The notes: generated by a model not told the origin, from the letters alone. A stretch of 64,000 nucleotides of DNA from Macrostomum lignano (GCA_002269645.1 NIVC01003394.1:1-64000), one strand, 5' to 3'; positions 6,801 through 62,925 are shown, counted from the first letter of the stretch. Translations and numbers: made by a program.

Positions 6801-8432
6801 CAATCTCAGGAAATAGATTAGGGCAAAGCACAATTCTAAGAAATAGATTAGGGTAAAAGCAGGATTCCAGGAAATAAATTCGAGTGAAAGCAGGATTCCA
6901 GGAAATATATTAGGGTGAAAGCAGGATTCCAGGAAATAGATATGGGTGAAAGCAGGTTTCCAGGAAATATATTAGGGTGGAAGAAGAATTCCAGGAAATA
7001 GATTAGGGTGAAACGAGATTCTAGGAAACAAATTTGGGTGAAGCGCGATTCCAGGAAATACGACATCGTAGATTAGGATGAAACGGGATTCTAGGAAATA
7101 GATAAGGATGAAACGAGATTCTAGGAAATAGATAAGGGTGAAACGGGATTCTAGGAAATAGATAAGGGTGAAACGGGATTCCGGGAAATAGACAAGGGTG
7201 AAACGGGGTTCTAGGAAATAGATAAGGGTGAAAGCAGGATTCCAGGAAATAGTTTAGGGTGAGAGCAGGATTCCAGGAAATAGTTTAGGGTGAGAGCAGG
7301 ATTCCAGGAAATAGATTAGGGTAAAGCGAGATTCTAGGAAATACGAGATCGTAGATAGGGTGAAACGGGATTCCGGGAAATAGACAAGGGTGAAACGGGA
7401 TTCCGGGAAATAGACAAGGGTGAAACGGGATTCTAGGAAATAGATAAGGGTGAAAGCAGGATTCCAGGAAAGAGTTTAGGGTGAGAGCAGGATTCCAGGA
7501 AATAGTTTAGGGTGAGAGCAGGATTCCAGGAAATAGATTAGGGTAAAGCGAGATTCTAGGAAATACGAGATCGTAGATAGGGTGAAACGGGATTCCGGGA
7601 AATAGACAAGGGTGAAACGGGATTCCGGGAAATAGACAAGGGTGAAACGGGATTCTAGGAAATAGATAAGGGTGAAATGGGATTCTAGGAAATAGATAAG
7701 GGTGAAACGGGATTCCGGGAAATAGACAAGGGTGAAACGGGGTTCTAGGAAATAGATAAGGGTGAAACGGGATTCTAGGAAATAGATAAGGGTGAAACGG
7801 GATTCTAGGAAATAGATAAGGGTGAAACGGGATTCTAGGAAATAGATAAGGGTGAAACGGGATTCTAGGAAATAGATAAGGGTGAAACGGGATTCTAGGA
7901 AATAGATAAGGGTGAAACAGGATTCTAGGAAATAGATAAGGGTGAAACGGGATTCTGGAACTCTTAGAAAGTCTTCAGTTAATCAGAACTATGAAAGATA
8001 ATTTCGTGAAAGCAAAGCCAACTAATCAAAGGCACACCTGGCCGCAGCCTCAAGCGTGGTCAAGTCGGCCGCCTTGCCCTGGCCCAGTCCATAGGCTTTG
8101 GTGGGGGTGTTGACGCAGATGAACACGAGATCGGCGCCCTCCAGCGGGCCAATCATGTCGCAGCTGAAGTGCAAATTGACGCCCCTGGTCTGGCTAATCA
8201 GTTCGGACAAGCCTGGCTCGTACAGCGGGTGCCTGTCCGAGTTCCAGGCGGCCACTTTAGCGGCCGAGATGTCCACCACGGTGACGTCAATGTCCGGGCA
8301 CTTGCTAGCGATCACTGCGCTGGACGGCACGCCGACATAGCCAGCGCCGATGCAGCAGATGCGCCGGATTGGCTGATGCGGGGGCCGCGTGGCCTGCGCG
8401 TCACCTGACGTTGACATGCCGGCCGCCCGCAT
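3819..8432 (-). CDS. UGDH: UDP-glucose 6-dehydrogenase; exons 8432..8038, 6733..6484, 5560..5042, 4115..3819
   Basis: Motifs [10 protein letters not shown] (Rossmann), [45 protein letters not shown] (catalytic Cys), [25 protein letters not shown]. Three GT-AG introns with matching phases (2, 0, 0). Confidence 0.97.
4130..4910. repeat. ~27-29 bp G-rich minisatellite in UGDH intron 3
   Basis: Unit gtcatgga(g/t)gggagcagattgttgaggg. Confidence 0.92.
5563..6428. repeat. 45-bp minisatellite in UGDH intron 2, abutting the 3' splice site
   Basis: Unit gtggatgacagtagcacacgaaactgcatacagtgtccctcaatg; accounts for the repetitive N-terminal part of ORF 5012..6220. Confidence 0.95.
6805..7958. repeat. 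~30-31 bp minisatellite in UGDH intron 1
   Basis: Unit gggtgaaacgggattctaggaaatagataa with variants ttccaggaa and ttccgggaa. Confidence 0.93.
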
Positions 8433-31141: not shown

Positions 31142-33845
31142 GGTTGACGGTCGTTTCGTCTGCCGCCAGTTCGTCTGCCACCCTTTCGTCTGCAAAAATA
31201 CGATACAGTCGTTTCGTCTGCCAACGAATAGTAAAGTTTTAATAAGTGTAAATATGTCAGTTGTTGTCATTAATTTGATATTTGAGATATTTGAGATAAC
31301 AGTGATTAAGATATCGGGATCATTTCTTAGTAGTAATGACTTAAACGAGTAATTTATGAATATTTATGTTTATATTTAATAAACTACGCAATTGAACGAA
31401 TTCAATGCATTTTCGTCATGACTCATGATATGGCATGACGCCATACTATCTCTTAACCGTCTTAAAGCTTCAAAGCTCAAAAGCAATTAGTCGAGTTAGA
31501 ATTATTTTACTTATTATAAGTAAGTTACACGCGCACAAATTATAAATCCCATTCTCACAGCTCACTACGTAGATTCAATTAAAGCTTATGTGGTAGTAGC
31601 GGACTACCACTAACTACTCGTAATTTTTTAATTAATTCCTCAAATAACATATATTACGGACATTCCCCTTTTCCACCGCCCCGTTTCTGGCCCAATCTGT
31701 CCACCCCTTGGCGCTATCTATGACGCGTTTGCCCTTTTTCTGGTGTAACTGCCCTCTTTCTGGTTTTCCGTGCCCTTTTTCTGTTTTTGTTTTTTTTCTT
31801 TGTGTTTTTCTGCGGAATTTTGCTCACCATGTTCTGGGCCTTTGTGTCCACGTTCTGTCCCCATTCTCTGGACCACTTTGCCCACTTTCTGTTCCTTTTT
31901 TGTTATTTAGCTTGGCTCGCCCCCTCTCTCTCCTTTAAACCCGTCTGCTGCTTCTTCTTTTCACCTCTCCTTCTCTTTTTCGCGAACTTAAACTTAATAA
32001 ATTTAATACTTTGTTCTCAGTTAGGGTAAATCCCTTAAAAGTCTAGGGACTTACGAGGGGTGTCCAAAAAGTAGTGATACTTTTAACCGTAGCTCTCGTT
32101 CTGTAGCTTCCTGTGATTTAAAATTTTATGAACTGATAGCGGAAAATCTCTTCTACAGACTGCTTTTTTGAATTTTTAAAATTGATACTAGAGAACAAAA
32201 GTTATACCCACGAAAGTAACAGTACCTGTACCATAGAGTTACACAAATTATATCGAAATTTATAGTAGTTGACTTCTGCACTCATTCATTAAGAAGGCAT
32301 CGATAAATGTCTTGTTTAAGCAATACCAAAGCCCAATTGCAAAATGATGCTCACTGTGACTGACTGAAATTTATCTATGGACGGGATCAGGCGCAGAAAA
32401 ATAAAGCATTAAATGCATTACTTTACTTGCAAACAGAGGATCGCTTGCATTTTGCGATTCGTTCATGATTTCATTGCCCATACTCGACAACACACATGAA
32501 TGTGCACTCAGTTGTTGCTCAGCAAAGCACTATCTTCACTCTTTGGGGCGCTGGCCATGGTGCCTCAGAAATTCACGCAAAACTTTGCTCTGCGCACGGA
32601 TCCTCTGCGGTCAGCAAAATGACAGTTTATCGATGGATGGAGCAGTTCAGCGAGGGAAGGATTGACTTGGCAGATCAGCATTGGACGGGGCGGCCATACG
32701 TTCATCGACCTGATGTACTGGCGGACTCCATTCTGAATCTTCTTGACGAGGACTCCCGAATGACCATTAGAGAGATCGCTGACAGGTTGGACAAGCCGAA
32801 ATCAACAATTCATCGAAGCTTACTCGGCATGGATCTCGTGAAGCTCAGCCTATAATTTGTGTAACTCTATGGTACAGGTACTGTTACTTTTGTGGGTATA
32901 ACTTTTGTTCTCTGGGATCAATTTTAAAAATTCAAAAAGCAGTCTGTAGAAGAGATTTTCCGCTATCAGTTCATAAAATTTTAAATCACAGGAAGCTACA
33001 GAACGAGAGCTACGGTTAAAAGTATCACTATTTTTTGGACACCCCTCGTATATTTGACTGTTTAGAGCTCCGCACCGCGGCTCCCCCGGAACATTTCCTG
33101 TCGTTTGGTCGTCTCCGCTACAATATTCAGCGTTGAATAATAAACTAACGTCAATTGTTTTCAACTATACCTAATCGAAAGCCGTAGCTTATCTTAAGTC
33201 ATTTGCCCGTGGGGCGTAAAATACCCAAGTTCTCATCTTAAAAGAAAGCTCTGAGACTTCAACGTTCCGTAATACGTAAATTACGGTGGTGGCAGCGCTA
33301 CTTTACTAACAGTAATCAATTAAACAATCGAAGTGCGTTAACTACGGTGTCTAAGGACCCTCTCTGAACGATCGCGCCTAACGAAGACCGTTCGTCTACG
33401 GCTAGACTACCCTCCCCCCGGGATTGAGGACCCCGGCAGTCGGAGTAAAACAAGAGGCGAATTTCCGTTGTGATTCTTCTGCGCGTTTTCCGGCTTCAAC
33501 TCGTGCGAACACAACGACGACCGGTTTCGAAGAAACCCCGAGTCCAAATTCGCGGCCGCCGATAATTTGAACCCAAATTATACAAGGAACCCCCATTGTC
33601 AAAATCGCCCCACCTCACTTATATACGAATAATTGTATTTCTTGGAAACATTGCGATAAGCAAAATAAAAAATACAAAGACTACATATAATTCTAAATCT
33701 GAAAATTACTAGTAAATTCTAACTATTAAAAATAAACTATAAATTAATTTCAGCCATTTAAAAAAAACTTATTTTGCTACTTATTTTAAAAAGTCGTTTC
33801 GTCTGCCGGCAGACGAAAAGGCGGCAGACAAAATGACCGCGCACC
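31142..33845. mobile_element. Non-autonomous DNA transposon with GG-starting TIRs and 8-bp TSD (Merlin- or MULE-like), host of a nested mariner
   Basis: Left ggttgacggtcgtttcgtctgccgcc versus right reverse complement ggtgcgcggtcattttgtctgccgcc; TSD gcctgcac at 31134-41 and 33846-53; subterminal TTCGTCTGCC repeats. Confidence 0.68.
32054..33048 (+). mobile_element. Internally deleted mariner (Tc1/mariner) element with ~200-bp TIRs and a truncated transposase N-terminus (32496..32855)
   Basis: TA|CGAGGGGTGTCC...GGACACCCCTCG|TA; arms 32054-32252 and 32851-33048. Peptide ASEIHAKL..AHG..AVS..TVYRW..QF.EGR.DL.D..WTGRP...D.RMTIREIA is a mariner bipartite HTH; no DD34D domain. Confidence 0.9.
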
Positions 33846-35878: not shown

Positions 35879-40608
<4,730 letters not shown>

Positions 40609-45567: not shown

Positions 45568-47347
45568 TCAACCGAGAAAAGCTCCGATGGTGGTGAGAAT
45601 GGCTTTGCCGCAGGCTGGGCAGGTGCAGAAGCTTCTCGCGCATTTCCGGCAGTATTTCAGGTGCGCGCAAGGCAACAAAACGCAGTCGAGGCTTCGCTGA
45701 CTGCAGTTCTTGCTCATCGGGCTGTCGTCGCAATCTGTTGAAGCCGGGCCGGAGCTTCTGGCCGGCTCCTCGGGCCTGTAGTCATCTGAATTTCTGAGTA
45801 AGAAAAAATCGAGGCCATTGATCGTATTGTTGTGTTCTGTACTTTTGTTTCAATGTAAGGGCACCCCGTCCTTCAGTCTTTGGATGACTCGTTAGTTGTG
45901 TGCGTTGTTCCATGCACCTTCCATGTGATTTGTCATTCGGCTTAAGCCTTTGCCGAGGTTAATTCCCTCCTCTCCCAGTTCTCCTTGTTATTAACTTATC
46001 ACAATTTTCGTGCCGTCAATTGGATTGGCGCTTCTGTGCCTCTTGTACTATTTGCTGTTCACTGCGTTCTGATTGGCTGGGCTGGGCGGCGGACTCGGTG
46101 TTTCCTTTCCCTCCTGGAGGTGTGGTTGGCTGATGCGGGATGGGGTCGGTGGTGGGGTGGTGGGTCTGGGTTGCCCAACCCTCCCCCTGTCGTTTTGGGT
46201 TTTGTCGTGCCATTTGATTGGCTTTTCTCACTTAGCCGGAAAGACGGGTCTTACTGCGAAGTCTCAATAATGAAAGAAGACCCGCTAGACCTACCGAAGC
46301 GTACCGGCGCACTTGTGCCATGCTGCTTTCGTAATTAAGCCTTTGTTACTAATTACATGAGTGCGTGCTGCTCTGTTCATTGTTTCGGTTGCCTAGGGGT
46401 TCGAAGAGCCCATGTGTCCGGACGCTCACCCCGTAGGCTAGTAGGGATCCTGGTATACAGCACTACGACTGTCTATATCTGTATCTAAATATCGCCCAGC
46501 ACAGATGAAATATTTGAATCGCTGAGGCTAATCTAATTTGTTGCATAGTGTTAAAGATACCTAGACCTTGAAAAAGGTTTTAACACTAAAAGTCGAAAAC
46601 GTATCATGTTAGAAATTACCTCAAGCAGTTGATGCGCTCGGTTTGTGCAGGTGTGGCTACGCACCAGCTGGCAGCTGCCTTCACCAAATCTGCGGTCCAG
46701 GAACCCAGCGTGCGCAGAGCATCCGGTATGCCGTGAATCACTCTGATGAGGTCTCCCGGCTGCGTCAATTTCAAGTCACTGCCTGCCGCCTGCTTCAAAA
46801 CCATGAGTTTCAACAAGGACAGGACGACGTCTCCTTCGGAAAAGCCGTACGACTTCACGTGTCCAACGATGGGGTCAAGAAGAGCTGATAGAAGCTGGCC
46901 GATCAGTTTTTCGTGTTTTTTAGCATCAGCAGCAATTTCAGCGTTGGGCGGCTTCTTGTCAATGAGCTGCAGCAATTGAAGCAGCTTGCAGTTGGGCTGG
47001 TGAAACGATTTCCACTGCTCCAGACGGTCTGTCAGTTTCTCAACTCGGAAGCCGCAGTGACAGCAACTGGCGCCCCAACTGCCATCGAAATGAAACCCCT
47101 GCTCGGCCACCTTTTCTGCTGCAGTTGCTTCTATAATGCCTTTGAACGACTGAAGACGGCGATTAAAGATAATCTGATCCGGTCTGTTTGATGTGCCGAT
47201 TATAAGTAGTAGATAACCGGCCAGAACCAAATTCCAAACTCTATTTTCTGCCCCTTGAATAGACTTTTTAGCCTGTTCGGCTGAGAGTAGCGGGATGGTC
47301 AGGGTCTGAATATTGGTTTGGTTGCTAGATTGACTGGCGCGGGCCAT
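45568..47347 (-). CDS. IAP-like gene 1 (divergent BIR, UBA-like, RING variant); exons 47347..46620 and 45793..45568
   Basis: RLQSF..AEQGFHF...SCCHC...HQPNC; VKSYGFS..PGDLI. Phase-2 intron TTG AG|GTAATT ... CTCAG|A; hand-translated last exon ...DDSPMSKNCSQRSLDCVLLPCAHLKYCRKCARSFCTCPACGKAILTTIGAFLG*. Confidence 0.78.
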
Positions 47348-48404
47348 TAATCGGTTCTTCAGTTGCCTGCTTGAACTCTGAAGGAACCTGTGAGGGTGCA
47401 AGCCAAAAAAACAAAATGAATCGTACGAAGCTTTATGGAAGGTATAACTTATTGGGGTTGTATTGCTGTCCAAAAATTACTGTAGCAGTTTTAGTTTTCA
47501 TAAATTTAATCTTTACTACGAGTACTAGGAAAAATCACAACAATAAAGTAGGCTGTGCGAATTTTAACTCTTTTTGTATTAATGAGCATTTCATGTATAT
47601 TATGTGGTATTCAACAATAAAGTTAGACAGATTCACGACCTACCATAGGCCATTTGCAGCAGAGAAAAGCTCTACATGTCCTATGTGTACATGTAGTGGC
47701 TGTGCTCCATTAGCCTTGCTGCAATGCAAACCGTATACTTCTTTACTCAGAGGCGATTTTCTTTTGCGAACAATGAGAGAGACTCATTGTATATTCGGAA
47801 CTTTTGTATTCGGAACAGCAAAATCGGAAACCGAAACCCTACACCCTGTGCGCCTGATCGAGAGTTGGAAAAACTTTGGGAAACTCGCAGTGTACAATCA
47901 GTCTTCCATGCAATTCTCCAGGTTTTCAGTGTTGCTGAGTATGTGGCTCCTACAAATAAGGAACTAAGGAGTCAAGGACTATGCAGTTATTCAAACAATA
48001 CGCTCGTAGAGGAACAGATCTGTGCCAAATTATAAGGGCATAAGCAATATAGACAGACCACTATTCTAGCCAGGAATATACGGGCCAGCTTTTCGAAGTG
48101 CGGTTTTAAAGAAGGCTCAAAATACAAAAGCTACTATTGGGTGTGGCCATAGACGATTCAGTCGCACACACACCCATGCAGCCATGAGCTAAGAAAGCAA
48201 TGCTTTAAGCTGGGAAAATAAAAAAGAACGTTACGATAACATGAAATAAAAATAAGACGCTCGGTTAAGAGAGCAAATACTTTGTAGTTGGCTCACTGCT
48301 GTCTTCCGCTAGAGAAGAAGTCACAACAGCTGCAAAATGGTAGGCTACAAAACTGACTACTTACAAAAGCCGATCGTCAAAACTGTCATTTCAGCTACTA
48401 CGAG

Positions 48405-48752
48405 CAGGGGCGTCGCTTTGGATTTTGTAGTGGAGGGAAAAAGCCAAGAATTCTACACATGTACATGTACATCACTAAATTCCGACATGTACGTTATTTT
48501 GAGAATCGCTTATTTTAGCATTTTAGCTTACTTTATATAAGAGAGACACTCCTTTCAACGCAGCTGGCATTCATTTTGGCACCGCAGGCACTCATTTTGG
48601 TGCCGCAGGTGCTATTTTTATCGCCCTAAAGCAAAATTATTGATTTCCATAACTGGTCACCAGGTAAAGGGGTGGGGGGGACAAAGCATCAAAGCTCCAG
48701 CCTTTAGTGGAGGGGGACACGTCCCCATGTCCCCCCGTTGGCGACGCATCTG
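48405..48752. mobile_element. hAT-like MITE
   Basis: Ends caggggcgtcgc ... gcgacgcatctg; flanks actacgag / actacgac (7/8). Confidence 0.62.
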
Positions 48753-49774
48753 ACTACGACTCTAGAATTTGAAACGTAAATTGAAATCAAAATGATTCCC
48801 AAACATTCAAACGTAAACCATTTTCACAACAAGTCTATAGACTCCGTTGCGTTACTATGAATTCAATTCATTGCGAGTGACATATCTAGTGCTTAGATGT
48901 TTTAAAATTAAAATGTCTAAATAATATACCAAGAAGCTTCCAAAAACCTAACAATGGGTTGAGAAAATTGTTGCATATTCTGTCAACTTGTAGAATAAAG
49001 CTTGAAAAAGGTTTCTAAAAATTGAATTTTAAAAGTTTTGCAAAAAAATCGTTAGGCCCATTAACGTATAGTATTTTTTTCATGCTACAGAATCGCAGAT
49101 GAAGGCTTTAAATCACAACAGCTTTATTTTAGGCGACTTAAACTCTTTATAGGTCTCTTTTAGGAATTTTACTTGAAAATAAATCTTCTTTTAAAAAATA
49201 ATCCGCTTTGTGATAGACACGTCTCGCTTTGAAACAGCTCACAGTTTCCCAGTAGAATAGAGTAGAGTAGCAGTAGGATTCCCATGCAGAAAATGATGTG
49301 GCTTAATATTTTATATTTCACTTTCTAAACAGTTTTTTTTCAGTTTTTTTTCGATGACTGATTAGCATATCTTTCCTCCTCCTCTTCGAAGAGTTGCAGC
49401 CCTTCCCAAGCTCGGACACTGGTGTTTTCCGTCATCTGATTAATTATGTCTTCAGCGAAGTAATTTTACCATCTCAGCGATCGCAATTCAGCTCTCTATC
49501 GTCAGACGAGGAATTACAAGAAACTCTGGGAGATTTAAGAAATAAAGAGCCGTGCGCAAAGACTACAGTGAGTTTACATATGTACTCAGCAACATTGAAA
49601 AGACGCCATCGTAGAAGATTCCTTCTGTGGTTGGCACTTTTGAGAGTGCAGGTAAAGTCTCTGATTGGCGCGAGATTCCATTCCCATATAGTAAAAAGGA
49701 CGTCTCCATGTGTGGGTAGTCTAGATATAAAATTCTAGCAGAAGTCTGTTTCAGGCTATCTGACAGTCGCTAAG

Positions 49775-52700
49775 TCACACTATATAGGCAGGTACATTGC
49801 ACAGTATATAGCGGCCACAAAGTTGACAATTCTTCATATCGCTGACGCACACTTGGCAGAACTTCAGGTGAGCGCACGGCAGCACGATCCGATTGCGTTG
49901 GCGACTGCGGCACTGAACACACTGCGGGCTGTCATCGTCTTGAAGCAGTGGATTGGCGTGCGTTACATCTTGCTCACTGCAATCGGGTTTTGTTCAAGGG
50001 GAATGTTTGAGAGGGTTGCGTGCAGCAATCACATCAAATCGAAGCAGACAGCTTAGACTAATATGTTATTAAATTTCCTCAGATAGGAGTTTTTAAACAC
50101 CCGTGAACTAGCTACTGGCTGGCGCCCCTGGTGCTGGCGCCCCTGGTGCTGGCGCCCCTGGTGCTGGCGCCCCTGGTGCTGGCGCCCCTGGTGCTGGCGC
50201 CCCTGGTGCTGGCGCCCCTGGTGCTGGCGCCCCTGGTGCTGGCGCCCCTGGTGCTGGCGCCCCTGGTGCTGGCGCCCCTGGTGCTGGCGCCCCTGGTGCT
50301 GGCGCCCCTGGTGCTGGCGCCCCTGGTGCTGGCGCCCCTGGTGCTGGCGCCCCTGGTGCTGGCGCCTCTGGTGCTGGCGCCCCTGGTTCTGGCGCCCCTG
50401 GTGCTGGCGCCCCTGGTGCTGGCGCCCCTGGTTCTGGCGCCCCTGGTGCTGGCGCCCCTGGTGCTGGCGCCCCTGGTGCTTGCGCGTCTGGTGCTGGCGC
50501 CCCTGGTGCTGGCGCCCCTGGTGCTGGCGCCCCTGGTGCTGGCGCCCCTGGTTCTGGCGCCCCTGGTGCTGGCGCCCCTGGTGCTGGCGCCCCTGGTGCT
50601 GGCGCCCCTGGTGCTGGCGCCCCTGGTGCTGGCGCCCCTGGTGCTGGCGCCCCTGGTTCTGGCGCCCCTGGTTCTGGCGCCCCTGGTTCTGGCGCCCCTG
50701 GTGCTTGCGCCCCTGGTGCTGGCGCCCCTGGTGCTGGCGCCCCTGGTGCTGGCGCCCCTGGTGCTGGCGCCCCTGGTGCTGGCGCCCCTGGTGCTGGCGC
50801 CCCTGGTGCTTGCGCGTCTGGTGCTTGCGCGTCTGGTGCTTGCGCGTCTGGTGCTTGCGCGTCTGGTGCTTGCGCGTCTGGTGCTTGCGCGTCTGGTGCT
50901 TGCGCGTCTGGTGCTTGCGCGTCTGGTGCTTGCGCGTCTGGTGCTTGCGCGTCTGGTGCTTGCGCGTCTGGTGCTTGCGCGTCTGGTGCTTGCGCGTCTG
51001 GTGCTTGCGCGTCTGGTGCTTGCGCGTCTGGTGCTTGCGCGTCTGGTGCTGGCGCCCCTGGTGCTGGCGCCCCTGGTGCTGGCGCCCCTGGTGCTGGCGC
51101 CCCTGGTGCTGGCGCCCCTGGTGCTGGCGCCCCTGGTGCTGGCGCCCCTGGTGCTGGCGCCCCTGGTGCTAAAGCCCCTGGTGCTAAAGCCCCTGGTGCT
51201 AAAGCCCCTGGTGCTAAAGCCCCTGGTGCTAAAGCCCCTGGTGCTAAAGCCCCTGGTGCTAAAGCCCCTGGTGCTAAAGCCCCTGGTGCTAAAGCCCCTG
51301 GTGCTAAAGCCCCTGGTGCTAAAGCCCCTGGTGCTAAAGCCCCTGGTGCTAAAGCCCCTGGTGCTAAAGCCCCTGGTGCTAAAGCCCCTGGTGCTAAAGC
51401 CCCTGGTGCTAAAGCCCCTGGTGCTAAAGCCCCTGGTGCTAAAGCCCCTGGTGCTAAAGCCCCTGGTGCTAAAGCCCCTGGTGCTAAAGCCCCTGGTGCT
51501 AAAGCCCCTGGTGCTAAAGCCCCTGGTGCTAAAGCCCCTGGTGCTAAAGCCCCTGGTGCTAAAGCCCCTGGTGCTAAAGCCCCTGGTGCTAAAGCCCCTG
51601 GTGCTAAAGCCCCTGGTGCTAAAGCCCCTGGTGCTAAAGCCCCTGGTGCTAAAGCCCCTGGTGCTAAAGCCCCTGGTGCTAAAGCCCTGGTGCTAAAGCC
51701 CCTGGTGCTAAAGCCCCTGGTGCTAAAGCCCCTGGTGCTAAAGCCCCTGGTGCTAAAGCCCCTGGTGCTAAAGCCCCTGGTGCTAAAGCCCCTGGTGCTA
51801 AAGCCCCTGGTGCTAAAGCCCCTGGTGCAAAGGTGCTCTGAAGATTGGCCCAGTCATCTAATATCTAATATTTGGAAAGCTCGGTTTAAATCTGATAGCG
51901 GACTCATATAATGGACAAAAATCTGTACATGTTGGTTAAATGCAAACTCAAAAGCATAGAGCAATAATACACGTAACTCGTAGTTACTACGACTTTAACA
52001 GTTGAACCGCAGCAGAGCAGCAAAAGCAGCATCTGTCGAACTTTGAAGCCACCGAGTTAACAAAAATCCTATAGGCGGCCTGCCGACCTCCTTAGCATCA
52101 GCGATGTTGCTTAATCAGAATGCATCCTATTGGCACGAGTACGCTGGATCAATGGCGAGTTTTGACTTTTACCGTGTTTTGTTTCAGTTTAGCAACTAAA
52201 AACGATGGCATAAATGAATTCGATATTAGTTTTTTAGGGGCTGTGTGCACCCTGGCGCACTTTAAGCGACATTGTCACACAACCGGCGAGAGGCATTACT
52301 GCTTATTCCGCCGACTGCCCTGAGCAGGCACACAAGCGCGCGGATACGCACGCAGTCATACCCACAGGCGCGCACTCACATAGGGGTGTACAGCGGCCCT
52401 GACTTTATTTATCGTTAGGCATGTACACTTCACTGTGCCTTGGGGTATGGATTCCAATTTAGCCCCAAATTCATGTGACTGCACTTGGAATCGAGCCTGG
52501 GCCGCTGGCACATGAGAGCGCCGCACCACACCACTGGTTGTTATTGCTTCCCCAAACAACAAAAGGTGTTATTGCTCATATTTAAAATTATGATTACTAT
52601 TAATATTTTTAAAATACGTCCTGTGTGTTGGCACGCAGTTAGTGACTTGCACTTCCGACTGAACTGTTGAATCTATCGACGGTCTGCATGGTGATGTTGC

Positions 52701-54766
52701 TGACTTCTTCAAATCTAATCAGGGTACGAGGCGAAAATCCGATTTGCATGCTGGTGTATACAGAATTTCTTCTACCTGAACAAAAAAGAGTATACAGGGT
52801 AGATTTCGTTTCCGTTTTATACATTGATCAGATCGAAGCCTTACTTTGGGCTCAATTCCGTAGCCTAAGCTGACGTCCCGCGAGCAGTCAATTTAGTTCT
52901 GAATGTTGAAAAACAGTCTGAGAGTCTCTGAGGTTCTATGGCCAAAGTGTTGCATAACGCTCTAATCAATTTGATCCTGCGAGCAGTAAAATTCACACAA
53001 TCTTTTTAAAATCTATGTACTGTAGATCAGTTATCATGCATCCCAGGGTCTAACACGACAACGCAACACAACACAACACAACGCAACAAGGCAATGCAAT
53101 GCGGAATAACACAACAGAATAGGAACCATCATGCTATAGTCAGTTTCGAAGGTTATCAAACTCAGAGAATCGGTAGGCCAGTGATGCAGCGGTGAAGCTG
53201 TAGGCTGTATAGCCAATCATCATTTCACGATGCCAACCTCCGCATTTTTCAATGCTTGCAAGATCAAGGAGATGAAGTAACGCTAACACGTCTTCATCCT
53301 GCAACTTCTTGGGACTGTCTGCCACCTTTTGGTGTACGATATCGGCGTTCAGTTATCTGGTACCGTCTTCTGATTGAATCGACTGTCCGGATCTTCAAAT
53401 TCCGCCACTGAGCAATTGCCGATGGCCTGTATGATCAAGAAGTACCTTTCGTCCCCGATCTTATCGTATGAACCGCGTCCTTCGAGCAGTTGCTTTTCAG
53501 CAGTGACGAAACTTTCGCTGCTCTCCGAATCGCTCATTCCAGCACGGGCTCCGAACAAAGTCAGTCTATGGGTCTCTGACAGTCTGTGGCTTGAGCGAAA
53601 TCAAGTGCTCCCAGGAACATATCATTGCTGTCCGGTAAATCGGGTGGGAACCATGGATGAAGGAAGGACGGATCCTTTTCTATTCCTTCATCCATGGTGG
53701 GAACATGATTGGAACGAAACGACAGTTCTGGCCATAGAACCCTAGGTGCCTCTGTGAATCCGTGTGGACTTTTACCTTTCAGATTAAATCCACTGCTCGC
53801 AGGACCGAATTGAGTGGGAGTGGTATATTGCAGCAAAGAACAAAGCACAAGCAAAAAGCAGAGTTAAAGCACAAATTCGATCGAGCAAACAAATACAGAA
53901 TCTTACGGCATCGTAGCTCCAAAATTGATATTCGACACATGGTTTCCGTTGTTAATACGAGCAGCAACCACTTGCTCAGGTACTCGATCGGTGGTTCCCA
54001 GACAGCTCGAAAGATCTCGCTGCAGCAGGTCTCTGAATGAGCCTCTACCAGCCAATGCTTCTCTCAAGAATGACACCAGCTCAGGCGACAGAGAGTGCAA
54101 GATCTGAATTAAGTCTCCAGGTCTCAGGTCTGAGCTTTTATCCGCTGGACAGAAGGCGTAGTTATTTATTGCCAGTGTCACGCCGTCCTCCGGGAAGCCG
54201 TACGATTCAACCTGGCCAATCAGTTGTCCGTTCAAAAGCAGCTCAAAGAGTTTTCGCAGTTTAGTCAAAAGCTTTTCAACTCGGGAAGCGATTTCAGCCA
54301 TCATCACGGATAGTTCAACATTTAGAAGTCGGATCAGTTGATGCAGACTGCACTCTGGCTGCTGGTTCGCGTGGCATTCAGCGGGCTCGCAAGCAGTCAG
54401 ATTGTCCGCGTGACCTCCGCAGTGGCAGCAGCTGGCACCTCCAAGTCCATCGCTGACAAATCCGTGCCTCGCCCAACGCTCCGCAGTTTCAACATCAACA
54501 AAGCCGTTACCAGAGAATGAGCGCAGACGATTTTCATAGCTCAGATTGGCTGGGCTGACGGATGCAGCTAAAATAGTCAATAAGTTACCCAGAACATAAA
54601 CTCGCAGCCTCGGGTTCGCATCCGGTGCCAATTGCACCTTTTGCTCACTTGGATTTGTCTTTTCATTTTGTTCCGATTGGGGAATTATCTTTGGCAGCAC
54701 AGTATTTACCAAAATGTTGTTTTCTTCGTTGGCCGTCGATGCTCCGTTGTGGTTGTAGTTGGACAT
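49775..54766 (-). CDS. IAP-like gene 2; exons 54766..53907 and probably 49976..49775 (RING)
   Basis: RLRSF..ARHGFVS..ASCCHC..EPAECH....PEC; VESYGFP..PGDLI. Donor ATG CC|GTAAGA (phase 2). Hand-read RING exon [54 protein letters not shown] behind a phase-2 AG at 49977/49978; the exon join is inferred. Confidence 0.7.
50117..51826. repeat. 15-bp minisatellite, ~114 copies, in homogeneous variant blocks
   Basis: Units GGCGCCCCTGGTGCT, TGCGCGTCTGGTGCT, AAAGCCCCTGGTGCT. Confidence 0.96.
52230..52545 (-). mobile_element. SINE family A copy 3 (older, internally deleted, degenerate head)
   Basis: gtgcaccctggcgcactttaagcgac...ttggaatcgagcctggg matches copies 1 and 2. Confidence 0.8.
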
Positions 54767-55724
54767 TTTGGCCGCCTGCAAAAAATAAAAATAGTAATGC
54801 AAAAAACCAATTCTGTCTAAAATTCTAATTTATTTCTGTAAACTGAAATATCCGTTACGAACTTTTTTGTTCGATGCGAACACGCTCGCTGAGTTTCCAG
54901 GAAATCAGCGGAAACTGTCGGACCTCCCAGCGCATAAATCTGAATCCTATAGCTGACTGGTCTGGCTTCAATCAAACTATTGTTTACATGTGTCTAATGA
55001 CGAATTCACAATCAATCAATCAATTCGTGCACCAAAACGTACCAATAAAACACATTAGAATCCGTAAGGGTAAAAAGCCTGTTTGTTTCTGGCAAGAGTT
55101 GAGCAATGCGCGAGAGCCGATGTGTTTTAGATGTTTTTGTCTCGTACGGCTAAAGAGGTTTATCTTTATGCCTTCGAGTATTTCGCTAGCATTGAATTGG
55201 CATATGCACATGGCTGGCCGCAGCAAGGACAGTCATTGTACACGGAGCCTTCACAATCTTTAACACGTCAAGAGAGTACAGCGATGTGCAAAACCCATGA
55301 AAAAAAGTAATGCAGGAGCGTAAGCTTGATGAAATGCTTATATACAAGCTGTTTAAACAATTTTTACAACAAGGATACAAGAGTAGATGCCACTTCAGTA
55401 CAAGAACAGCCCGTAGTATTAGGCATATTATTAGCAGTGACGCCGTGCTTGTATTGTAATTGTACACCGCAACATTGACAAGCTCAAATATTCTGTGGAT
55501 CCGTGATTTTCAATCCATTACAGGCGTTGAGATTATTGTAGAGTACTTTTGCACCTGTGGTAGTTATCTACTTCGTAATAAACTAAAGTTGTTCTACGCG
55601 AAAGGCATTGCATTTCTCTTTTTATGCAATATGGTGAAATTATATCCGATTAATGCTTCAGAAAAATAGTTTTCAAGCATACATTTACTTCACCTAATTT
55701 TTTATTACACCTGCTCTAATGGGT

Positions 55725-55900
55725 AGATAGATGTGCAACCGACAGCTCAGCCGCAGCTATTACGCGGAGCATCTGAAGACTGCTCACGGCTGTTCAGTCC
55801 AAGGACTGTGGGGGGGGGGGTCGCCACCCAAATCCTCAATTACCCCAGCTGTACTGAAGCAATTCAGAGTTAAAATTCTTGCTCAAGAACACAAATTCAC
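55725..55900 (-). mobile_element. SINE family B partial copy
   Basis: Reverse complement matches ~42155-42360 (gtgtctttgagcaag, ttggactgaacagccg, ggctgagctgttggttgcacatct). Confidence 0.75.
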
Positions 55901-56602
55901 CACATACTAGTACATATCAAAACAATATGATGCTTACCTTTGCGATAAAATTCCTCACTATGATTCCTGATGTTCACTCAGATTGGCATAATGGTACGTA
56001 CGGTGGTATGCTAGTTTTCTGCTGTTAACTAGGAACCAACCTTGTATGCATGCAAATTTTCCAATTCACATCGTAAACACAGGGTGTGCGCCCATAAGCG
56101 TACGTTTTTACTTGTGTGCGCAATGCAAGTACACTGGTATACGGGCGTAGCCAGTACAGGGTATCCCAGCTAATGTACGATGCCAGTGCACCAGACACTT
56201 TCCTTCAAATTTCAGACAATATACATACTAGGTACTACTCTGATAGATAGCTTCTCAGTAGCTACTACATCTATCGTTTAATTAAATTCCAATGCCACTT
56301 CTAAAGACGTCAGATAGACCTCACTTTTGGAATTTAATTTGTTTAAAAAAATTTTGAACAAACTCCACGGTAATTAAATGGAGCTACGTTTTTTCAAGAT
56401 GATATTTATAAACAGTACATATTTCTTTTTTCTTATTGACATGTGTACATGTCATTCGTACGAGTACATGAAATTTGTACATGAAGTAGCTGTGGAATAT
56501 TGACCAATATTAATTGCTATTGTGTCGGTGTGAAAGTATGCCGCATATACAATACAAGTATCAACTGTACAAATTGAGCGTCAAAGAGAGCATTCGGTTT
56601 AA

Positions 56603-57613
56603 TCACAATGCCAAAACCGCAGTCAGCATGCTCAAGATCTCAATCCCACAGCGGGGACATGAGCTCAGGAGATTGAGACATTCGCGGCAGGCGATGAGGT
56701 GAGTACAGGGAAGGCAGACTCGGTCGCGAGGTCGTTCGTAGCACTCGATGCACCGCCAGTTCGTTCCCGAATCCTCGGCCTCCGTCTGCCTCCGTCCCGC
56801 AGAAGCAGTTTTCTCACCCGACTGATCCTCTGGCGGCTGGCAGACTTCATCGCCTTCGGTCTCCAAGGGCACGGGTGTTGAGTCCGTTGGAATTCGGAGC
56901 CGGTCTTGAACGATGGGTGACGCTAGGAGCAGGTCTAGCACGTCAGGAAGCTCGTCCAAGTCAGTCCGCAGCTCGTGGATCAAGCCAATGATTTCGCCTG
57001 GCTGCTTAGCGCCAGAAGCTTCAGGGCCACCAGCCAGCAGTAGCTTAAGCTGGACAAAGATGACTTCATTGGCCGAAAATCCAAAAGACTCCACAAATTT
57101 AGTTACAGGATCTCTGAGTGCAGCTAAGAGTCTTCTGATGAGCTGCTCCAGCCGCTCTGCATCGGCGATGTACTTAACGTCGTCTACTTCGGGTCTTGCC
57201 TTGTTGAGAAACTGCCAAAGGCGTAGCATAGCACAGTGAGGTCGTCGGTTCGAGTGCCAGTCTCCAGGATCGCCATTCACCAACGAGTCAACTCGCGCAC
57301 CGCATAGAATGCAGCTGACACCGCCGAGTCCATCGCTGTAGAATCCGCCATCCGCCCATTGGTGAGCAGCGGCTTCGTCCACGAGACCTTCGAAGGAACG
57401 CAGTCGACTTGTGAAGCTGAGCTTGTCCTGGTAGGGTGAAGATGATCCTAGAATGACCAGGAGACTGCCGACCAGAAAGTTTCGAATCGTCTCGGAGCCA
57501 GACTTCCAGCGCTCCTTCAGTTCTGTCAGCCGGGAGTTTGAGAACAGACAAGAGCTTACTCGAAGCTCATTGACGTCTTTCGGAACCTGTAGCTTTTGAA
57601 GACCTGAAATCAT
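56603..57613 (-). CDS. IAP-like gene 3 (BIR, UBA-like, RING) in one open frame
   Basis: RLRSF..ADGGFYS..VSCILC..GDPGDWH....PHC; VESFGFS; C-terminal CIECYERPRDRVCLPCTHLIACRECLNLLSSCPRCGIEI. Confidence 0.85.
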   Translation of the reverse strand: MISGLQKLQVPKDVNELRVSSCLFSNSRLTELKERWKSGSETIRNFLVGSLLVILGSSSPYQDKLSFTSRLRSFEGLVDEAAAHQWADGGFYSDGLGGVSCILCGARVDSLVNGDPGDWHSNRRPHCAMLRLWQFLNKARPEVDDVKYIADAERLEQLIRRLLAALRDPVTKFVESFGFSANEVIFVQLKLLLAGGPEASGAKQPGEIIGLIHELRTDLDELPDVLDLLLASPIVQDRLRIPTDSTPVPLETEGDEVCQPPEDQSGEKTASAGRRQTEAEDSGTNWRCIECYERPRDRVCLPCTHLIACRECLNLLSSCPRCGIEILSMLTAVLAL

Positions 57614-58490
57614 AATGTTACCTTGAAATAATATATAAAGATAAAACCCTCCATTTTAGACATATCTCATTAGCTTCATTCGAAATTGCCTGCAATTCCA
57701 AGGGCTAGCCAAGTTTGTTCCTCGGAAACGCCAAGGAAATGCCTTTGAAATCGGTCTAATAGTTTAATAACTGCCTGAAGTTCCACTTAATAAGCGCACT
57801 AATGGGTTAAGTGCTTTGCTAATGAACTGTGCAGTACATGAACTTGCTATGCAAGCATTTGACAGTTTCCTGAGCAACAAGAATCTGCACATTTCTACCC
57901 TCATACACTAAAGCAGTTATATCGATTGGAATTGTACACTATATATAGCTATTTCAGGTGTAAACGTTAGTACATAAACAGTAAAGTAAATAAATTGCTT
58001 TAGTACTTCAGTAGATTAGAATATTTATACCTTATTACAGATTTTTCGTTCCTAGTAGCAAGGCACAAACTTTTTTAAATAGCGCCGCTGTTTTTGCTTT
58101 GCCTTCAAAGCGTAGAGCGAGTGTACAACCTACACGGTACTATCCACGGTGTGCATGGGCGCCTCTGTACATTTTGCATTGTAAGCTTTTAACTGTCATG
58201 GCGACAACGCTCTTGCAATTTTGGCAGTAACTATTCACTATAGAATCAAGCAGTGAGCTAGAAAGTGTACTCAAGCTGAATGGTAGAATGATGCTATTAG
58301 AGCATCATATCGCTGCAGTATCCTCGATGTCTCAGAGAATGATTGTTATAAGTACATGTACAGCAGTTAGATTACACGAATGAGTCAGGAATTATGTTCT
58401 ATTTTGCTTATTTATCCCTCTTTTGCCCCGGGCGATAGTTTATGTCACGCTTGTTTTTATTTATTTTCATCGGTGAAAAATCTCTCAGTC

Positions 58491-59768
58491 TCAGGGCATA
58501 TACGCTTGTTTCTCAGCCGAAATCTTGCAGTTGCAAGCGGGACACACGAAATATCCTGAAATGCAACGCTTGCAGTACAAGAGATGCTTGCACGGCAGCA
58601 GCAGCACTTCCCGAGACCTGGTCTGGCAAAGGTGGCACAGCGGGCTGTCTTTCAATGCCTTCTGGTTGGCAGTGGTCTCTTGATGGCCTTCTGGTGCCCT
58701 GTAATAGTTAATAAGGTAGCATAAAAACATTGTTTTGAGCATGATTCTTACCCTCAGAATCTCACGATTCTTACCCCCCCCCCAGAATCTCACGATTCTT
58801 ACCCTCAGAATCTCACGATTCTTACCCCCCAGAATCTCACGATTCTTACCCCCCAGAATCTCACGATTCTTACCCCCCCAGAATCTCACGATTCTTACCC
58901 TCAGAATCTCACGATTCTTAACCCCCAGAATCTTACGATTCTTACCGGCAGAATCTCATGATTCTTACGAGCGTACCCCCAGAAAAAAAAGTACCCCGAT
59001 TAAAATTCGCTGGGGTGGGGCAACACTGGCTGTCAATTCTGCGAAAGGAAATTTGCAAAAGTCTAACCTGATCGAGGGGCTTTCATCGGCTGAAATCTCC
59101 AGATTTCGGATGGTACCCGGCCGGTTCATGACGTCTGAGCTTCTCGGGTCAGCGGTGACTTTGTGACTGGCAAAATCCAGCAGCCTCTGCACCATGCTAG
59201 CCAGCTCTGCAATGTACTCCGGAAGCGAATGCTCAGCCTCTATCAGATCCCCCGGTTTCCACGCCAGAGCTCCGCGATTCAGCTTGAAGAAGAGGCGCAA
59301 GGCGCCCAACGCGGTCTTGGCTTTCGAAAACCCGAACGATTCGACGAAACCAATTTTGAAGTCCCTTAGAAAGAGGAACAGCTTCATGATTAGCTTATGA
59401 AACTTGGCAGTTTCAGCGGTCAGCTCAGAGTCAGGAATCGATCCCGGCTTTTCAGAGAGTCGACGGAGCTGCGACAGGGCGCAGTCAGGCCGGTGGTTCG
59501 CGCTCGATTCTCCGCAGTGGCAGCAGGCGCTGTCGACTCCATTGCTGTAGAAACCGTCCTGCGCCAATCGATGTGCCACTTCTTCATAGTGACGATTGTC
59601 CAGGAATGATTTGAGACGATCCTTGAAGCTGAGCCGGTTTAAGCTCACTGCTGTTCCAAAAATAACCAACATCGTGCCAATTAGATAAATTTCCCGTCCT
59701 GATTGCAACTCTTCCGGAGGCCAGATAGACAATATGTACTGTATAACTTGCTTTATGCTGTCGTCCAT
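58491..59768 (-). CDS. IAP-like gene 4 (BIR with internal deletion, UBA-like, RING); exons 59768..58969 and 58698..58491
   Basis: RLKSF..LAQDGFYS..ACCHC..HRPDC; VESFGFS..PGDLI. Phase-2 intron TC|GTAAGA ... TACAG|G; RING CHLCQTRSREVLLLPCKHLLYCKRCISGYFVCPACNCKI. Confidence 0.8.
58742..58968. repeat. ~24-bp minisatellite, ~10 copies, starting at the 5' splice site of IAP-like gene 4
   Basis: Sense-strand unit GGGGGTAAGAATCGTGAGATTCT. Confidence 0.9.
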
Positions 59769-60299
59769 TGTCCTTCTGAACAGTGACTACGCCAAGTCCC
59801 ATGAAGGCTCGTTTTATGCAGTAACATGGAACCGAAAAAAGCAAATCTCTTATCAACCAACACGCACAATGCAGTGAACGCTACAATCTATTGTACAATG
59901 TATGCAATAGGTTTTAACAAAATAATTTCGCTCAGCCAATAAGATGCCGCTCTATTGCCTGGCTGTTGAAAGCAATATAACAAAATTGTATCTCGCTAAT
60001 GGGTGTTTTAAATGACTTATTTACTGTGTAAGAAACGCAGATCTCTATGAAATATACTATTGAGATACAATGACACTAATATAATATATCGATGCCTTGT
60101 GATAGGCATCTATCAGCAGTCTATTGAGCCTTAGAAATGAGAGCAGCGTCTCATGGCGGGCGCAACTCAAGGCTTGGTGCATAGACCGAACAAGGACGAC
60201 GTAACTGTTATGTTAATATGACTCAAACTCGTCGAAAAGGAATTATCAAAATATAAATATCTAATTACAAAACTGCCTATCAGCAACGCTCGCTAGGAG

Positions 60300-61316
60300 T
60301 CAGCAAATTGTCGCTCTGATGACAGTCAAAATGTCAGCTCGGCATTTCGGGCAGCTCCGGACCTCAGCGGTCAGGCAGCGGCTGCAGAAGCAAAAGTGAG
60401 CACACGGCAGGATCACTCGGTCCCGGTTGCGCGTGAAGCACCGCTGGCAGAGCGGACTGTCGCTGCTGCTGAGGTCCGGCTGGCTGAATGATGACAGTTC
60501 AGAGACTCGACGACCCGAAGCCGGAGAAGTCTCAGCTGATTGGGCGGTCGGCTGTCGATCTTCAACTGGGTGGTTCTTCGTCGAGGTGTTCGCATCGATG
60601 AACTTTAGCCAGCGACAGGAGGCTGCGCTGCCGACGGTGGCATTGGCTTGCTTCACGAGCTGGATCAGCTCGCCAGACCTCAGTTCGGCATCAGCTGTAG
60701 CCTGGAAAACATGAGCCGCAGCAGCCAAGGTTAAATCGAACTTTGAGAATCCGAACGATTCCGCGAGCAGCACAGACTGATTGTTGATGGCGTCCTCGAC
60801 TTGTCTGAACAGCGATTCAAATCTGAGTGAATCGGCGACCTTGGCGGACAATCGCTTATCGAGAAGTTGCAGCAGCCGCAGCAACTGGCAGTCGGGTTTC
60901 TGGCTGATGTGCCACCGCTCGGGGTCATCCGCGATCAGCCGGTCAGCAGGGACTCTGCACTGGCAGTAGCAGCAGCTGGCACCGTCGCCGCCGATGCTGT
61001 AGAATCCAGACTGCGCCCACCGGCAAGCCGCGGCGCTGTCGAGGACGCTCAAGAATGACTGCAGTCGGGTGTTGAAGTCGAGCTGGAGTCGGTTGGCAGC
61101 CACGGCGTGAATGACGAGCAAGCGGCCGACCACAGCAGCGCTCACAGAGTCGCTGTTTTGCTGCAGAAGCTTCTCAGCGCAGTTCAGATGCCAGGGACAC
61201 AGGAGCAGCAGCTCCCTGGCTTGAAGCAGCAGTCGCCATGCAGAGCTCGCGGCTTGCCTTCGACAACAGATTGTCGGCTCCGAGGCCCAGTCGTGCCATT
61301 GATGAGGGTCCATCAC
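60300..61316 (-). CDS. IAP-like gene 5 (BIR, UBA-like, RING) in one open frame
   Basis: RLQSF..AQSGFYS..ASCCYC..DDPERWH....PDC; AESFGFS; RING CQRCFTRNRDRVILPCAHFCFCSRCLTAEVRSCPKCRADI. Confidence 0.85.
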   Translation of the reverse strand: MMDPHQWHDWASEPTICCRRQAASSAWRLLLQARELLLLCPWHLNCAEKLLQQNSDSVSAAVVGRLLVIHAVAANRLQLDFNTRLQSFLSVLDSAAACRWAQSGFYSIGGDGASCCYCQCRVPADRLIADDPERWHISQKPDCQLLRLLQLLDKRLSAKVADSLRFESLFRQVEDAINNQSVLLAESFGFSKFDLTLAAAAHVFQATADAELRSGELIQLVKQANATVGSAASCRWLKFIDANTSTKNHPVEDRQPTAQSAETSPASGRRVSELSSFSQPDLSSSDSPLCQRCFTRNRDRVILPCAHFCFCSRCLTAEVRSCPKCRADILTVIRATIC

Positions 61317-61705
61317 CGTGCTCCAGCGGCCGACTTGTCAGATCGTTTGCCTGAGACTGAGAGTTGGATCCCGTGAACTGTGCTTGAGTCATGTGTTGCT
61401 TCTAAAAGTGGACGTTGGTGACAGGGTGCCGGCTACTAATAAGTAGTCTAAGTGATCTATTTTTAGAAACAAAACTGGAACACTGCCAAGTTTTTGAAGT
61501 GCAACTGGAATGCTGGGCAAAAAATGGTCTGTGCGTCGTCAACTTTGCTTTCTACCTAAGTAGTCCGTACTTCAAACTGTATTGATACCTTGTTGCACCT
61601 CTTTTATTATAAATGATTTAAATTATTATAATTTTAAAGACGTACGATTTGTGATGAATTTCTTTCAGCAATTCCTAATAACCTAAAATCCTAATATTAA
61701 GTGTC

Positions 61706-62925
61706 CGCCCCCGTCGCGGTACGGTGACGCAGATCCTGGCCCTCCGCCGCATCATCGAGGAGGCGCGCATCCACCAGTCAAGCCTTATCGTCATCTTTGT
61801 TGACTTCCTCAAGGCCTTCGACTCGGTGGCGCGCGGCGCGCTGCCTCACGTGCTCCGTGCCTACAACGTACCGCAGCAGCTGATCTCCGCCATCATGGCG
61901 CTGTATCAGGACACCACCGCCGCGGTAGCGACGCCAGACGGACCGTCGGAACTGTTTAGCACGACCTCCGGAGTGCTACAGGGTGACACTCTGGCCCCTT
62001 TCTCTTCGTGCTGGTGATGGACTGGGTGCTCAGGACCGGCCTGCCGACATCAGAGGACGGCTTTCTGCTGCAAAGGCGCACCAGTAGACGGCACCCGGAG
62101 AAGAAACTGTCTGTCCTTGGCTACGCGGACGACCTCGCCCTGCTGTCTTCGACGGCCGAAGGCGCCCAACGGCTTCTGGACGGCCTGACTGCGGCGGCGG
62201 CGAGGGTCGGTCTCGTCATCAACGCCAGGAAGACCGAGGTGCTGACGGTGCCGCATGATCTACCCGCCGAGATTCGACTTCGAGACGGCGACGGCCCCGG
62301 GACGGCGCTCCCGAAGTGCCTTCAGTTCGTCTACCTCGGCGGACTGGTGCCGGACGTCGGTGACGACCTAGCGAGACGGCGCGGCAAGGCCTGGGCTGCC
62401 TTCCGATCTGTGCGGGCGGTGCTGCTCTCCGAGGCCCTGTCCGACGGCGCCAGGTCCCAGCTGTTCCAGGCGGTTGTTGAGACCGCCCTGCTGTACAATG
62501 CTGAGACCTGGACGCTGACCGGGGCGCTTGAGGCGCAGCTCGACGCGGCGCATGCGGCCCTAGTCCGCGCCGCTTTCGGCGCCCGCCGCGGCCCTGGCAG
62601 CGAGACAACCGAGTCCCTGTACAAACGCACAGGCCTGACGCGGCCTTCTGCCCTGCTGAGTCAGCGGCGCCTGCGGCTTGCCGGACATGTCATCCGGGCC
62701 GAAGCCTACTGCCCAGAGCCGCTGCAGGACGTCCTGATGTGGACCCCGCAGGGACCGCGCAGACGTGGTCAGGGACGGTCAGCCCGCTACGTCGACCGCC
62801 TTTTTGAAGATGCGCGAGCACCCAGCCAGACGGCCGGTGTGAAGCACATTAGAGACCTGGCTCTGAAACGCGCGATTTGACGCTCCCCCTTCTTGGCCAC
62901 TCCCGTGGCTGGCGTGGGGCGTAAC

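Follow-up and report, generated by a model that had tools for sequence, protein, structure and literature searches.

The 64,000-nucleotide stretch of Macrostomum lignano contig NIVC01003394.1 analyzed here (positions 1-64000, assembly GCA_002269645.1; hereafter the window, its coordinates being those of the record) contains an array of five paralogous genes of the BIR-RING type that characterizes the IAP family. The genes, g1 to g5, lie on the minus strand between 45568 and 61313 and are transcribed in the order g5 to g1. The listing of open reading frames (ORFs), a five-way alignment, and tblastn all bear out the initial annotation, which had described five minus-strand genes with one layout; five paralogs and five RING-coding segments are found within 45568-61316. 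In all of them one finds a hydrophobic leader, a BIR, a helical linker, a three-helix module with the signature ESFGF...PGDLI (hereafter UBA-like), and a C-terminal RING, so that the four motifs described at first are present in every gene, with departures from the expected zinc ligands in g1 and g4. Pairwise identities among the five proteins are 30-33%, and because tblastn of one paralog against another gives E values of 1e-10 to 1e-38, their similarity is far beyond chance. Neither the rest of the window nor the 10 kb upstream of g5 contains a further copy. Taken together, the sequence comparisons presented in the following make it very probable that these genes are five old tandem paralogs belonging to a Macrostomum-specific and highly divergent branch of the IAP family.

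Three genes (g1, g2, and g4) have one intron each, always between the spacer and the RING exon; g3 and g5 are intronless. The first gene in the order of transcription, g5 (60300-61313), is a single exon of 337 aa, identical to P0001, a GenBank protein of this 99,975-bp contig, with the leader GRLLVIHA at 61104-61127, the BIR at 60888-61067, the UBA-like module at 60651-60761, and the RING at 60342-60452. Exon 1 of g4 (59068-59768) codes for the leader GTMLVIFG (59655-59678), a degenerate BIR (59481-59618), and the UBA-like module (59229-59342), and ends at 59068 with the donor CAG/GTTAGA (the slash marks the exon boundary). After an intron carrying a 23-bp minisatellite (58699-59067) and the acceptor TATTAACTATTACAG/, exon 2 (58491-58698) codes for the RING (58533-58640), with its stop at 58491. 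The spliced product of 302 aa is identical to P0153 (UniRef A0A1I8HW95). The intact single-exon ORF of g3 (56603-57613, 336 aa) has its leader GSLLVILG at 57446-57469, its BIR at 57233-57406 (C-x2-C-x15-H-x6-C), its UBA-like module at 56975-57091, and its RING at 56648-56752; it has no GenBank gene call.

In g2, exon 1 (53907-54766) contains the leader GNLLTILA (54566-54589), the BIR (54350-54529), and the UBA-like module (54095-54208), with the donor GCC/GTAAGA at 53907. The intron of 3930 nt (49977-53906) includes a GC-rich 15-bp minisatellite of 114 copies at 50118-51828, and exon 2 (49775-49976), located by tblastn and translation, holds the RING (49817-49924) and the stop (49775-49777). 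The spliced product has 353 aa, the length of the annotated gene at a homeologous locus described below. Another splice model of g2 (donor at 53972, acceptor at 49972) was dropped, as the 53907/49976 model reproduces this length. Finally, exon 1 of g1 (46620-47347) starts at the first ATG (MARASQ...), codes for the leader GYLLLIIG (47195-47218), the BIR (46988-47158), and the UBA-like module (46733-46855), and ends with the donor GAG/GTAATT at 46620, whereas exon 2 (45568-45793, acceptor TTTTTTCTTACTCAG/) codes for the RING (45610-45714), with the stop at 45568. The splice sites of g1 are good GT/AG sites, the product has 317 aa, and UniRef holds two close relatives, P0002 and P0152. GenBank annotates a single array gene on this contig, g5: over record positions 50300-71313, the g3 ORF and the exons of g2 and g4 lying there are uncalled. 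The intronic minisatellites (50118-51828, 15 bp in 114 copies, 65% GC; 58743-58968, 23 bp in 9.4 copies) give rise to spurious ORFs of considerable length, one of them a 521-aa "LAPLV" repeat.

The terminal RING had been assigned to the C3HC4 class of the IAP/MDM2 type, and this is confirmed in all five proteins, which score above the gathering threshold of the Pfam family zf-C3HC4_3 (PF13920, 27 bits) with 32.0 (g1), 35.2 (g2), 34.3 (g3), 36.0 (g4), and 36.3 bits (g5). The set of zinc ligands is complete in g2 to g5; in g1 a Ser replaces the first zinc Cys. A family profile matches the RINGs of cIAP1, cIAP2, and XIAP in PDB with E values of 1e-9 to 1e-10, also that of BIRC7 (4AUQ), and the BIR3-UBA-CARD-RING structure of cIAP1 (3T6P) with E = 6e-14. 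Most members, though not g3 and g5, have an aromatic residue at the third position from the C-terminus (AFLG, AYIV, AYMP, AFIA), as do XIAP and cIAP; it belongs to the tail by which IAP RING dimers activate E2~Ub.

The BIR is much less readily recognized by single-sequence searches. With the Pfam profile (PF00653, gathering score 22.9 bits), g1 to g5 score 15.4, 13.9, 19.9, 15.2, and 20.1 bits, respectively, and among the paralogs found elsewhere in the genome P0164 passes (36 bits) and P0155, P0157, and P0011 have no match. The zinc-binding BIR pattern of the initial annotation is nevertheless supported once sequences are combined into profiles. The profile of the five window sequences retrieves from PDB 32 top matches that are all BIRs, the best being ILP2/BIRC8 and XIAP BIR3 (E = 5.8e-6). 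The family profile of 13 sequences matches single BIR domains (XIAP BIR2 and BIR3, ILP2, and DIAP1 BIR2) with E values around 1e-8, and NAIP with 1e-16. Among 1.84 billion representative proteins, the same family profile has 553 matches at E ≤ 1e-3, the best 150 of which were inspected; the approximately 70 nonfamily matches that were read all have BIR repeats, and wherever a source name is given, it is that of an annotated IAP. Structure prediction is consistent with this: the 35 top Foldseek matches of the full-length AlphaFold2 (AF2) model of g1 are all XIAP BIR3 or ILP2, with E values of 0.07-0.5 and template modeling scores (normalized on the target) of 0.44-0.60, the model itself having a mean predicted local distance difference test (pLDDT) of 59 on a shallow alignment. 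Homology to BIRs is thus established at the level of sequence profiles, with the predicted fold as supportive evidence.

The analysis of the BIR sequences shows major differences from the canonical domain. The C-x2-C motif and the last Cys are kept in all five copies, and His-x6-Cys is found in g2, g3, and g5, with zinc loops of 15, 15, and 17 residues, respectively; these three copies have the full set of zinc ligands in both BIR and RING. In g1, a Lys occupies the canonical position of the His, and a His occurs three residues later (four before the last Cys). In g4, the loop from CxxC to His is shorter by about 14 residues, which leaves six residues there and His-x3-Cys. According to the hidden Markov model (HMM) alignment to XIAP BIR3, the family lacks the Trp that follows RLxTF. 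The alignment to XIAP BIR3 and ILP2 further indicates that the two Trp of the groove for the IAP-binding motif (IBM), W310 and W323 in what is taken here to be human XIAP numbering, are conserved in none of the five copies: Leu, Ser, or Arg stands for the first and Arg, Gln, Lys, or His for the second. An acidic residue at the position of E314 (same assumed numbering) is present only in g1 and g5. Because W310 and W323 have no counterparts in it, the Trp after RLxTF is missing, and the zinc loop has 15-17 instead of 16 residues, the family BIR is, as far as sequence alignments tell, not a canonical IBM-binding type II BIR. With both groove Trp missing and the zinc loop altered in length, its ligands are probably not the classical Smac/Reaper-type N-termini.

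The central module provides a more ambiguous case. It had been proposed to contain a UBA-like MGF-type loop, and one part of the evidence agrees with this. When a 12-sequence profile of the module is compared by hhalign with 15 UBA segments taken from the canonical IAP matches and chosen by eye, the two align over 47 columns with 87.9% probability (P = 3.2e-6) and with ESFGF opposite MGF. The score of 28.7 exceeds those of the reversed and 60 column-shuffled controls (all ≤13; shuffled, 7.5 ± 1.9). The module also lies between BIR and RING, where XIAP and DIAP2 have their UBA, and whole-protein HMM alignments to canonical IAPs run collinearly through it. The AF2 model of the isolated module (pLDDT 80.7) has helices at 11-18, 23-40, and 47-62, in a helix-loop-helix-helix arrangement. 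Other searches do not return a UBA: Pfam gives nothing for the module at E ≤ 10, the PDB profile search with this region alone gives only SH3 and PDZ noise, and the best Foldseek match is RuvA domain III (E = 1.2-4), with no eukaryotic UBA among the 50 listed. RuvA domain III is here taken to share the fold class of UBA (SCOP fold a.5). The SH3 (Stac) and PDZ (DegP) matches (E = 0.16-0.4) are driven by the string RPGDLI and were rejected because the predicted structure of the module is all-helical. The negative searches, together with a helix 2 and a loop before helix 3 that are longer than in textbook UBAs, would fit a family-specific helical packing or dimerization domain that merely resembles the IAP UBA and does not bind ubiquitin. 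In view of the full-register hhalign match, well above controls, of the position in the protein, and of the fold class of the RuvA match, this alternative is somewhat unlikely, and the module is probably a diverged IAP-type UBA.

The leader is a G-x-(L/M)-L-x-I motif 20-21 residues ahead of the Arg of RLxSF, conserved across the wider family, and in the AF2 model of g1 it forms, with low to moderate confidence, a helix beside the domain. One could see in it a diverged homolog of the leader of canonical type II BIRs ("LG(I/V)...PKxPxY" in invertebrate IAPs, or the "TGQVVD" linker of XIAP), which might contact the active site of a protease. The XIAP linker, which precedes BIR2, blocks caspase-3/7. 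HMM alignments of 17 canonical IAP BIRs do extend into the leader motif, and the 136 canonical leaders analyzed are enriched in a G at -18 with a hydrophobic residue next to it at -17, and have PKxPxY at -11 to -6. Only paralogs P0059, P0157, and P0164 resemble these leaders in having a Pro at -8 and an aromatic residue at -6, and in the XIAP-like linker of P0026 the distance to the RLxSF Arg is likewise 20 residues. However, hhalign of the family leader against the 136 canonical ones gives a nonsignificant 4.8% probability and a single aligned column, and where the XIAP linker has its central acidic residue, the family has a hydrophobic one. Such an origin is therefore doubtful, and as the profile comparison is not significant, the motif is not regarded here as homologous to the leader of canonical IAPs or to the XIAP linker. 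The initial view that the pre-BIR motif corresponds to no known IAP domain stands, and by these comparisons the leader is a family-specific element matching no known IAP element.

All traced full-length relatives of the array (P0005/P0155, P0008/P0157, P0011, P0018, P0019, P0059, P0060, P0077, and P0164) are from M. lignano, which agrees, for the best 150 of the 553 library matches, with the proposal of a lineage-specific family. Their records are named "hypothetical protein" or "RING-type domain-containing protein" (accessions include PAA78111.1 for P0155, PAA57201.1 for P0157, PAA84874.1 for P0011, and PAA78574.1 for P0019), and the array genes are not annotated as IAPs. P0155, P0157, P0011, P0018, P0019, P0059, P0060, and P0164 have the leader, the BIR, the ESFGF...PGDLI module, and the RING in common with the window genes, with the exception that P0059, P0060 (205 aa, ending soon after the UBA-like module), and P0164 lack the RING as listed. 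Some paralogs have long Gln/Pro-rich repeat spacers, for example of the PALEQQR type between the UBA-like module and the RING. Identity between these relatives and the window genes is 16-30%. The latter form their own cluster (30-33% among themselves), as expected for local tandem duplication. Including the array, the BIR-(UBA-like)-RING genes of M. lignano number twelve or more. P0154 (PAA78110.1) and P0155 (PAA78111.1) have consecutive accessions and lie on one contig of 241,009 bp, suggesting that there are other tandem pairs in the genome. A word-indexed protein search with the 13-sequence alignment retrieved two proteins only, P0059 and P0164, and with g3 alone none, its prefilter of 8000 candidates being unsuited to this family. 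A literature search found nothing relevant on Macrostomum IAPs.

Several of these observations weigh against placing the array in the IAP family as a Macrostomum-specific branch. None of the five window sequences singly reaches the Pfam BIR threshold; in the Pfam check that had been suggested they stay at 13.9-20.1 bits, even though homology holds between profiles. The canonical CX2CX16HX6C spacing is exact in none of the copies and broken in g1 and g4, and the full-length model is weak, with Foldseek E values no better than 0.07. The UBA assignment is based on one profile-profile test against segments picked by eye, Pfam, PDB, and Foldseek searches returning no UBA. The RING of g1 lacks a zinc ligand, and the homeolog of g4 has a premature stop (see following). 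Lastly, relatives were judged from the best 150 of the 553 matches, and other flatworms may hold some.

A second array is found on NIVC01000019.1, where the order g5'-g4'-g3'-g2' is kept and the proteins are 91-94% identical to those of the window. Because the paralogs of one array are only ~31% identical, compared with 91-94% between homeologs, the genes must have duplicated long ago and do not reflect an artifact of assembly, as the initial annotation had argued from the divergence of the copies. Between the two arrays, the ratio of nonsynonymous to synonymous substitutions (dN/dS, Nei-Gojobori method) is 0.56 for g5, 0.40 for g3 (93.8% identical to its homeolog, the ORF of which is intact), 0.41 and 0.71 for exons 1 and 2 of g4, and 0.36 and 0.11 for exons 1 and 2 of g2. 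Taken gene by gene, the ratio lies within 0.36-0.56. The pooled ratio of 0.43 is significantly below 1 (Fisher test, p = 1e-8), hence the genes are under purifying, though somewhat relaxed, selection. The family had also been described as fast evolving, which at a dN/dS of about 0.4 holds moderately at most. Splice sites are conserved between homeologs, and introns differ in length (3930 nt in the window versus 4466 nt for g2, 369 versus 912 nt for g4). Just upstream of g5, at about 61318-61392, the window has one extra C relative to the homeolog (GGACCC versus GGGCC), which reflects either a true indel or a homopolymer error of the long reads. Owing to this C, the ATG at 61392 (MTQAQFTGSNSQ...), upstream of g5, does not share the reading frame of g5; in the homeolog it does, and the protein is 31 residues longer.

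A major exception to this pattern of conservation is g4' (NIVC01000019.1, 9620-10324), in which codon 99 has changed from TCG to TAG, creating an in-frame stop just after the BIR. For this reason GenBank annotates just a C-terminal product of 176 aa (PAA93983.1). Together with the loss of some 14 residues, including the canonical His, from the BIR of g4, this nonsense codon suggests that the g4 lineage is decaying. If one adds the Ser at the first RING Cys and the Lys at the BIR His position of g1, the GenBank annotation of g5 alone on the window contig, and a dN/dS relaxed relative to typical housekeeping genes, one might regard most of the array as decaying pseudogenes, relics of an IAP expansion. 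Yet none of the five ORFs is interrupted in the window, those of g2, g3, and g5 are uninterrupted in the homeolog too, with every zinc ligand kept, the pooled dN/dS is significantly below 1, the homeologs share their splice sites, and database models exist for g4, g5, the g1 relatives P0002 and P0152, and the g2 homeolog. An array made mostly of relics is therefore very unlikely. Judging by their zinc ligands, g2, g3, and g5 look fully competent, and g1 and g4 are probably impaired or decaying.

The proteins would thus consist, in order, of a short leader, one BIR zinc fold, a helical linker, a three-helix module homologous to UBA, a low-complexity spacer, and a C3HC4 RING of the IAP/MDM2 type. 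A role of the leader as a membrane anchor, making the proteins membrane-tethered E3 ligases, is highly improbable, for although no other stretch is as hydrophobic in most members and its 19-residue Kyte-Doolittle mean reaches 1.68-1.86 in paralogs P0019, P0157, and P0164, the window genes have means of 1.37-1.52 (usual threshold 1.6), hydrophobic residues follow one another without a break for 11-15 positions, g5 and P0011 have an Arg or a His within it, and it lies ~12 residues ahead of the BIR core, as a helix beside the domain in the AF2 model. The transmembrane reading was rejected on account of the hydropathy being mostly under threshold. Most likely, the leader would pack as a helix on the BIR or the linker and so stabilize the BIR. 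The RING would dimerize and recruit E2~ubiquitin, a retargeted BIR would pick the substrate, and the UBA-like module may contact or read ubiquitin chains. The array proteins are accordingly best described as predicted RING-dimer E3 ubiquitin ligases with a retargeted BIR, and the sequence divergence of the paralogs suggests that they have different targets. Roles in caspase control, signaling, stem cells, immunity, cell death, or regeneration are a matter of speculation. One may tentatively, and with less than even confidence, combine these elements: an ancient RING-IAP lineage would have been kept, expanded, and re-engineered, with a BIR that no longer reads IBM N-termini, a functional leader (for example, a pseudo-substrate or protease-blocking segment, a dimerization element, or a membrane tether), and paralogs retargeted to proteins in cell-death, stem-cell, or immune control. 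If this scenario, itself rather unlikely to hold in all its parts, were true, the family would be a distinct functional class of BIR E3 ligases.

The closest known counterparts are the C-terminal half of XIAP and human ILP-2/BIRC8, which have the same domain order (BIR3-UBA-RING) and a similar size. XIAP BIR3 and the ILP2 BIR are the best solved-structure matches of the five-gene profile, the profile aligns from BIR3 through UBA with the XIAP-like protein P0026, and the XIAP/ILP-2 RING is of the same Pfam type and has the C-terminal aromatic tail. The differences are in the BIR (~20% identity, no Trp after RLxTF, groove Trp replaced, zinc loop of 15-17 versus 16 residues), in the extra hydrophobic leader, and in a UBA that Pfam does not recognize. 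The top nonfamily matches (P0006, P0007, P0012, P0038, and P0128) are IAPs of insects, ticks, crustaceans, and molluscs, named XIAP-like, DIAP2-like, or BIRC7-like at NCBI (BIRC3-like also occurs among the source-named matches), and in canonical IAPs P0047 (74.7 bits, HMM positions 38-327) and P0038 (67.8 bits) a single HMM alignment runs from leader to RING. These invertebrate IAPs have two to three or more canonical BIRs that pass Pfam, whereas in the Macrostomum proteins the BIR is single and degenerate, several of the paralogs having no Pfam BIR match at all. ML-IAP/Livin (BIRC7), the RING structure of which (4AUQ) is the one matched by the family profile, also has a single BIR and a C-terminal RING. 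It is not known to have a UBA, and its BIR is of the canonical IBM-binding kind. The Macrostomum family, unlike ML-IAP, has in addition the helical linker and the UBA-like module.

What is new here is the lineage and the degree of divergence, the architecture itself being already known from the XIAP half and ILP-2/BIRC8. Bivalves and other groups offer well-documented cases of IAPs expanded in tandem within a single lineage (PMC7831173, PMC8917759, PMC13159474), and as single-BIR-RING architectures are well known too, IAP biology as a whole is advanced by no more than an increment. According to a 2026 survey, which covered 2,843 IAPs in 312 species, nematodes and Platyhelminthes have lost the RING-containing IAPs (PMC13159474); Macrostomum is absent from the main text of that paper. 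Since M. lignano carries at least a dozen such genes, this loss is not phylum-wide in Platyhelminthes, and a RING-IAP lineage persists, in expanded form, in an early-branching free-living flatworm. The window genes fall under the Pfam cut-off and some paralogs have no BIR match, hence screens based on domain thresholds miss divergent BIRs. As M. lignano is a model of regeneration and stem-cell biology open to RNAi and transgenesis, these genes are testable candidates, in particular for a flatworm control of ubiquitin-dependent cell death or signaling through a noncanonical BIR.

The window as a whole is unusually rich in minisatellites (32 rows in the TRF output). Outside the array, a purine-rich 25-bp minisatellite of 2.9 kb and ~117 copies at 36764-39636 is extremely asymmetric between strands, with a GC skew of up to 0.85 and an AT skew of up to 0.63. 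The neighboring minus-strand genes at 326-1325 and 5012-8432 are, in that order, a Sec20/BNIP1-like SNARE (Pfam Sec20, 78 bits) and exons of a UDP-glucose 6-dehydrogenase; a 45-bp repeat array lies directly 5' of the coding sequence of the exon for the central domain of the latter. Within 21891-26829 (minus strand), the ORFs 21891-22682 and 26488-26829 resemble by eye an adrenodoxin-reductase-type flavoprotein, with no Pfam match. On the plus strand, a reverse-transcriptase fragment of the long interspersed nuclear element type (RVT_1, in two frames; 61724-62880) lies directly upstream of g5 and a helix-turn-helix fragment of a Mos1/mariner-type transposase lies at 32496-32855, and both look like degraded mobile elements.

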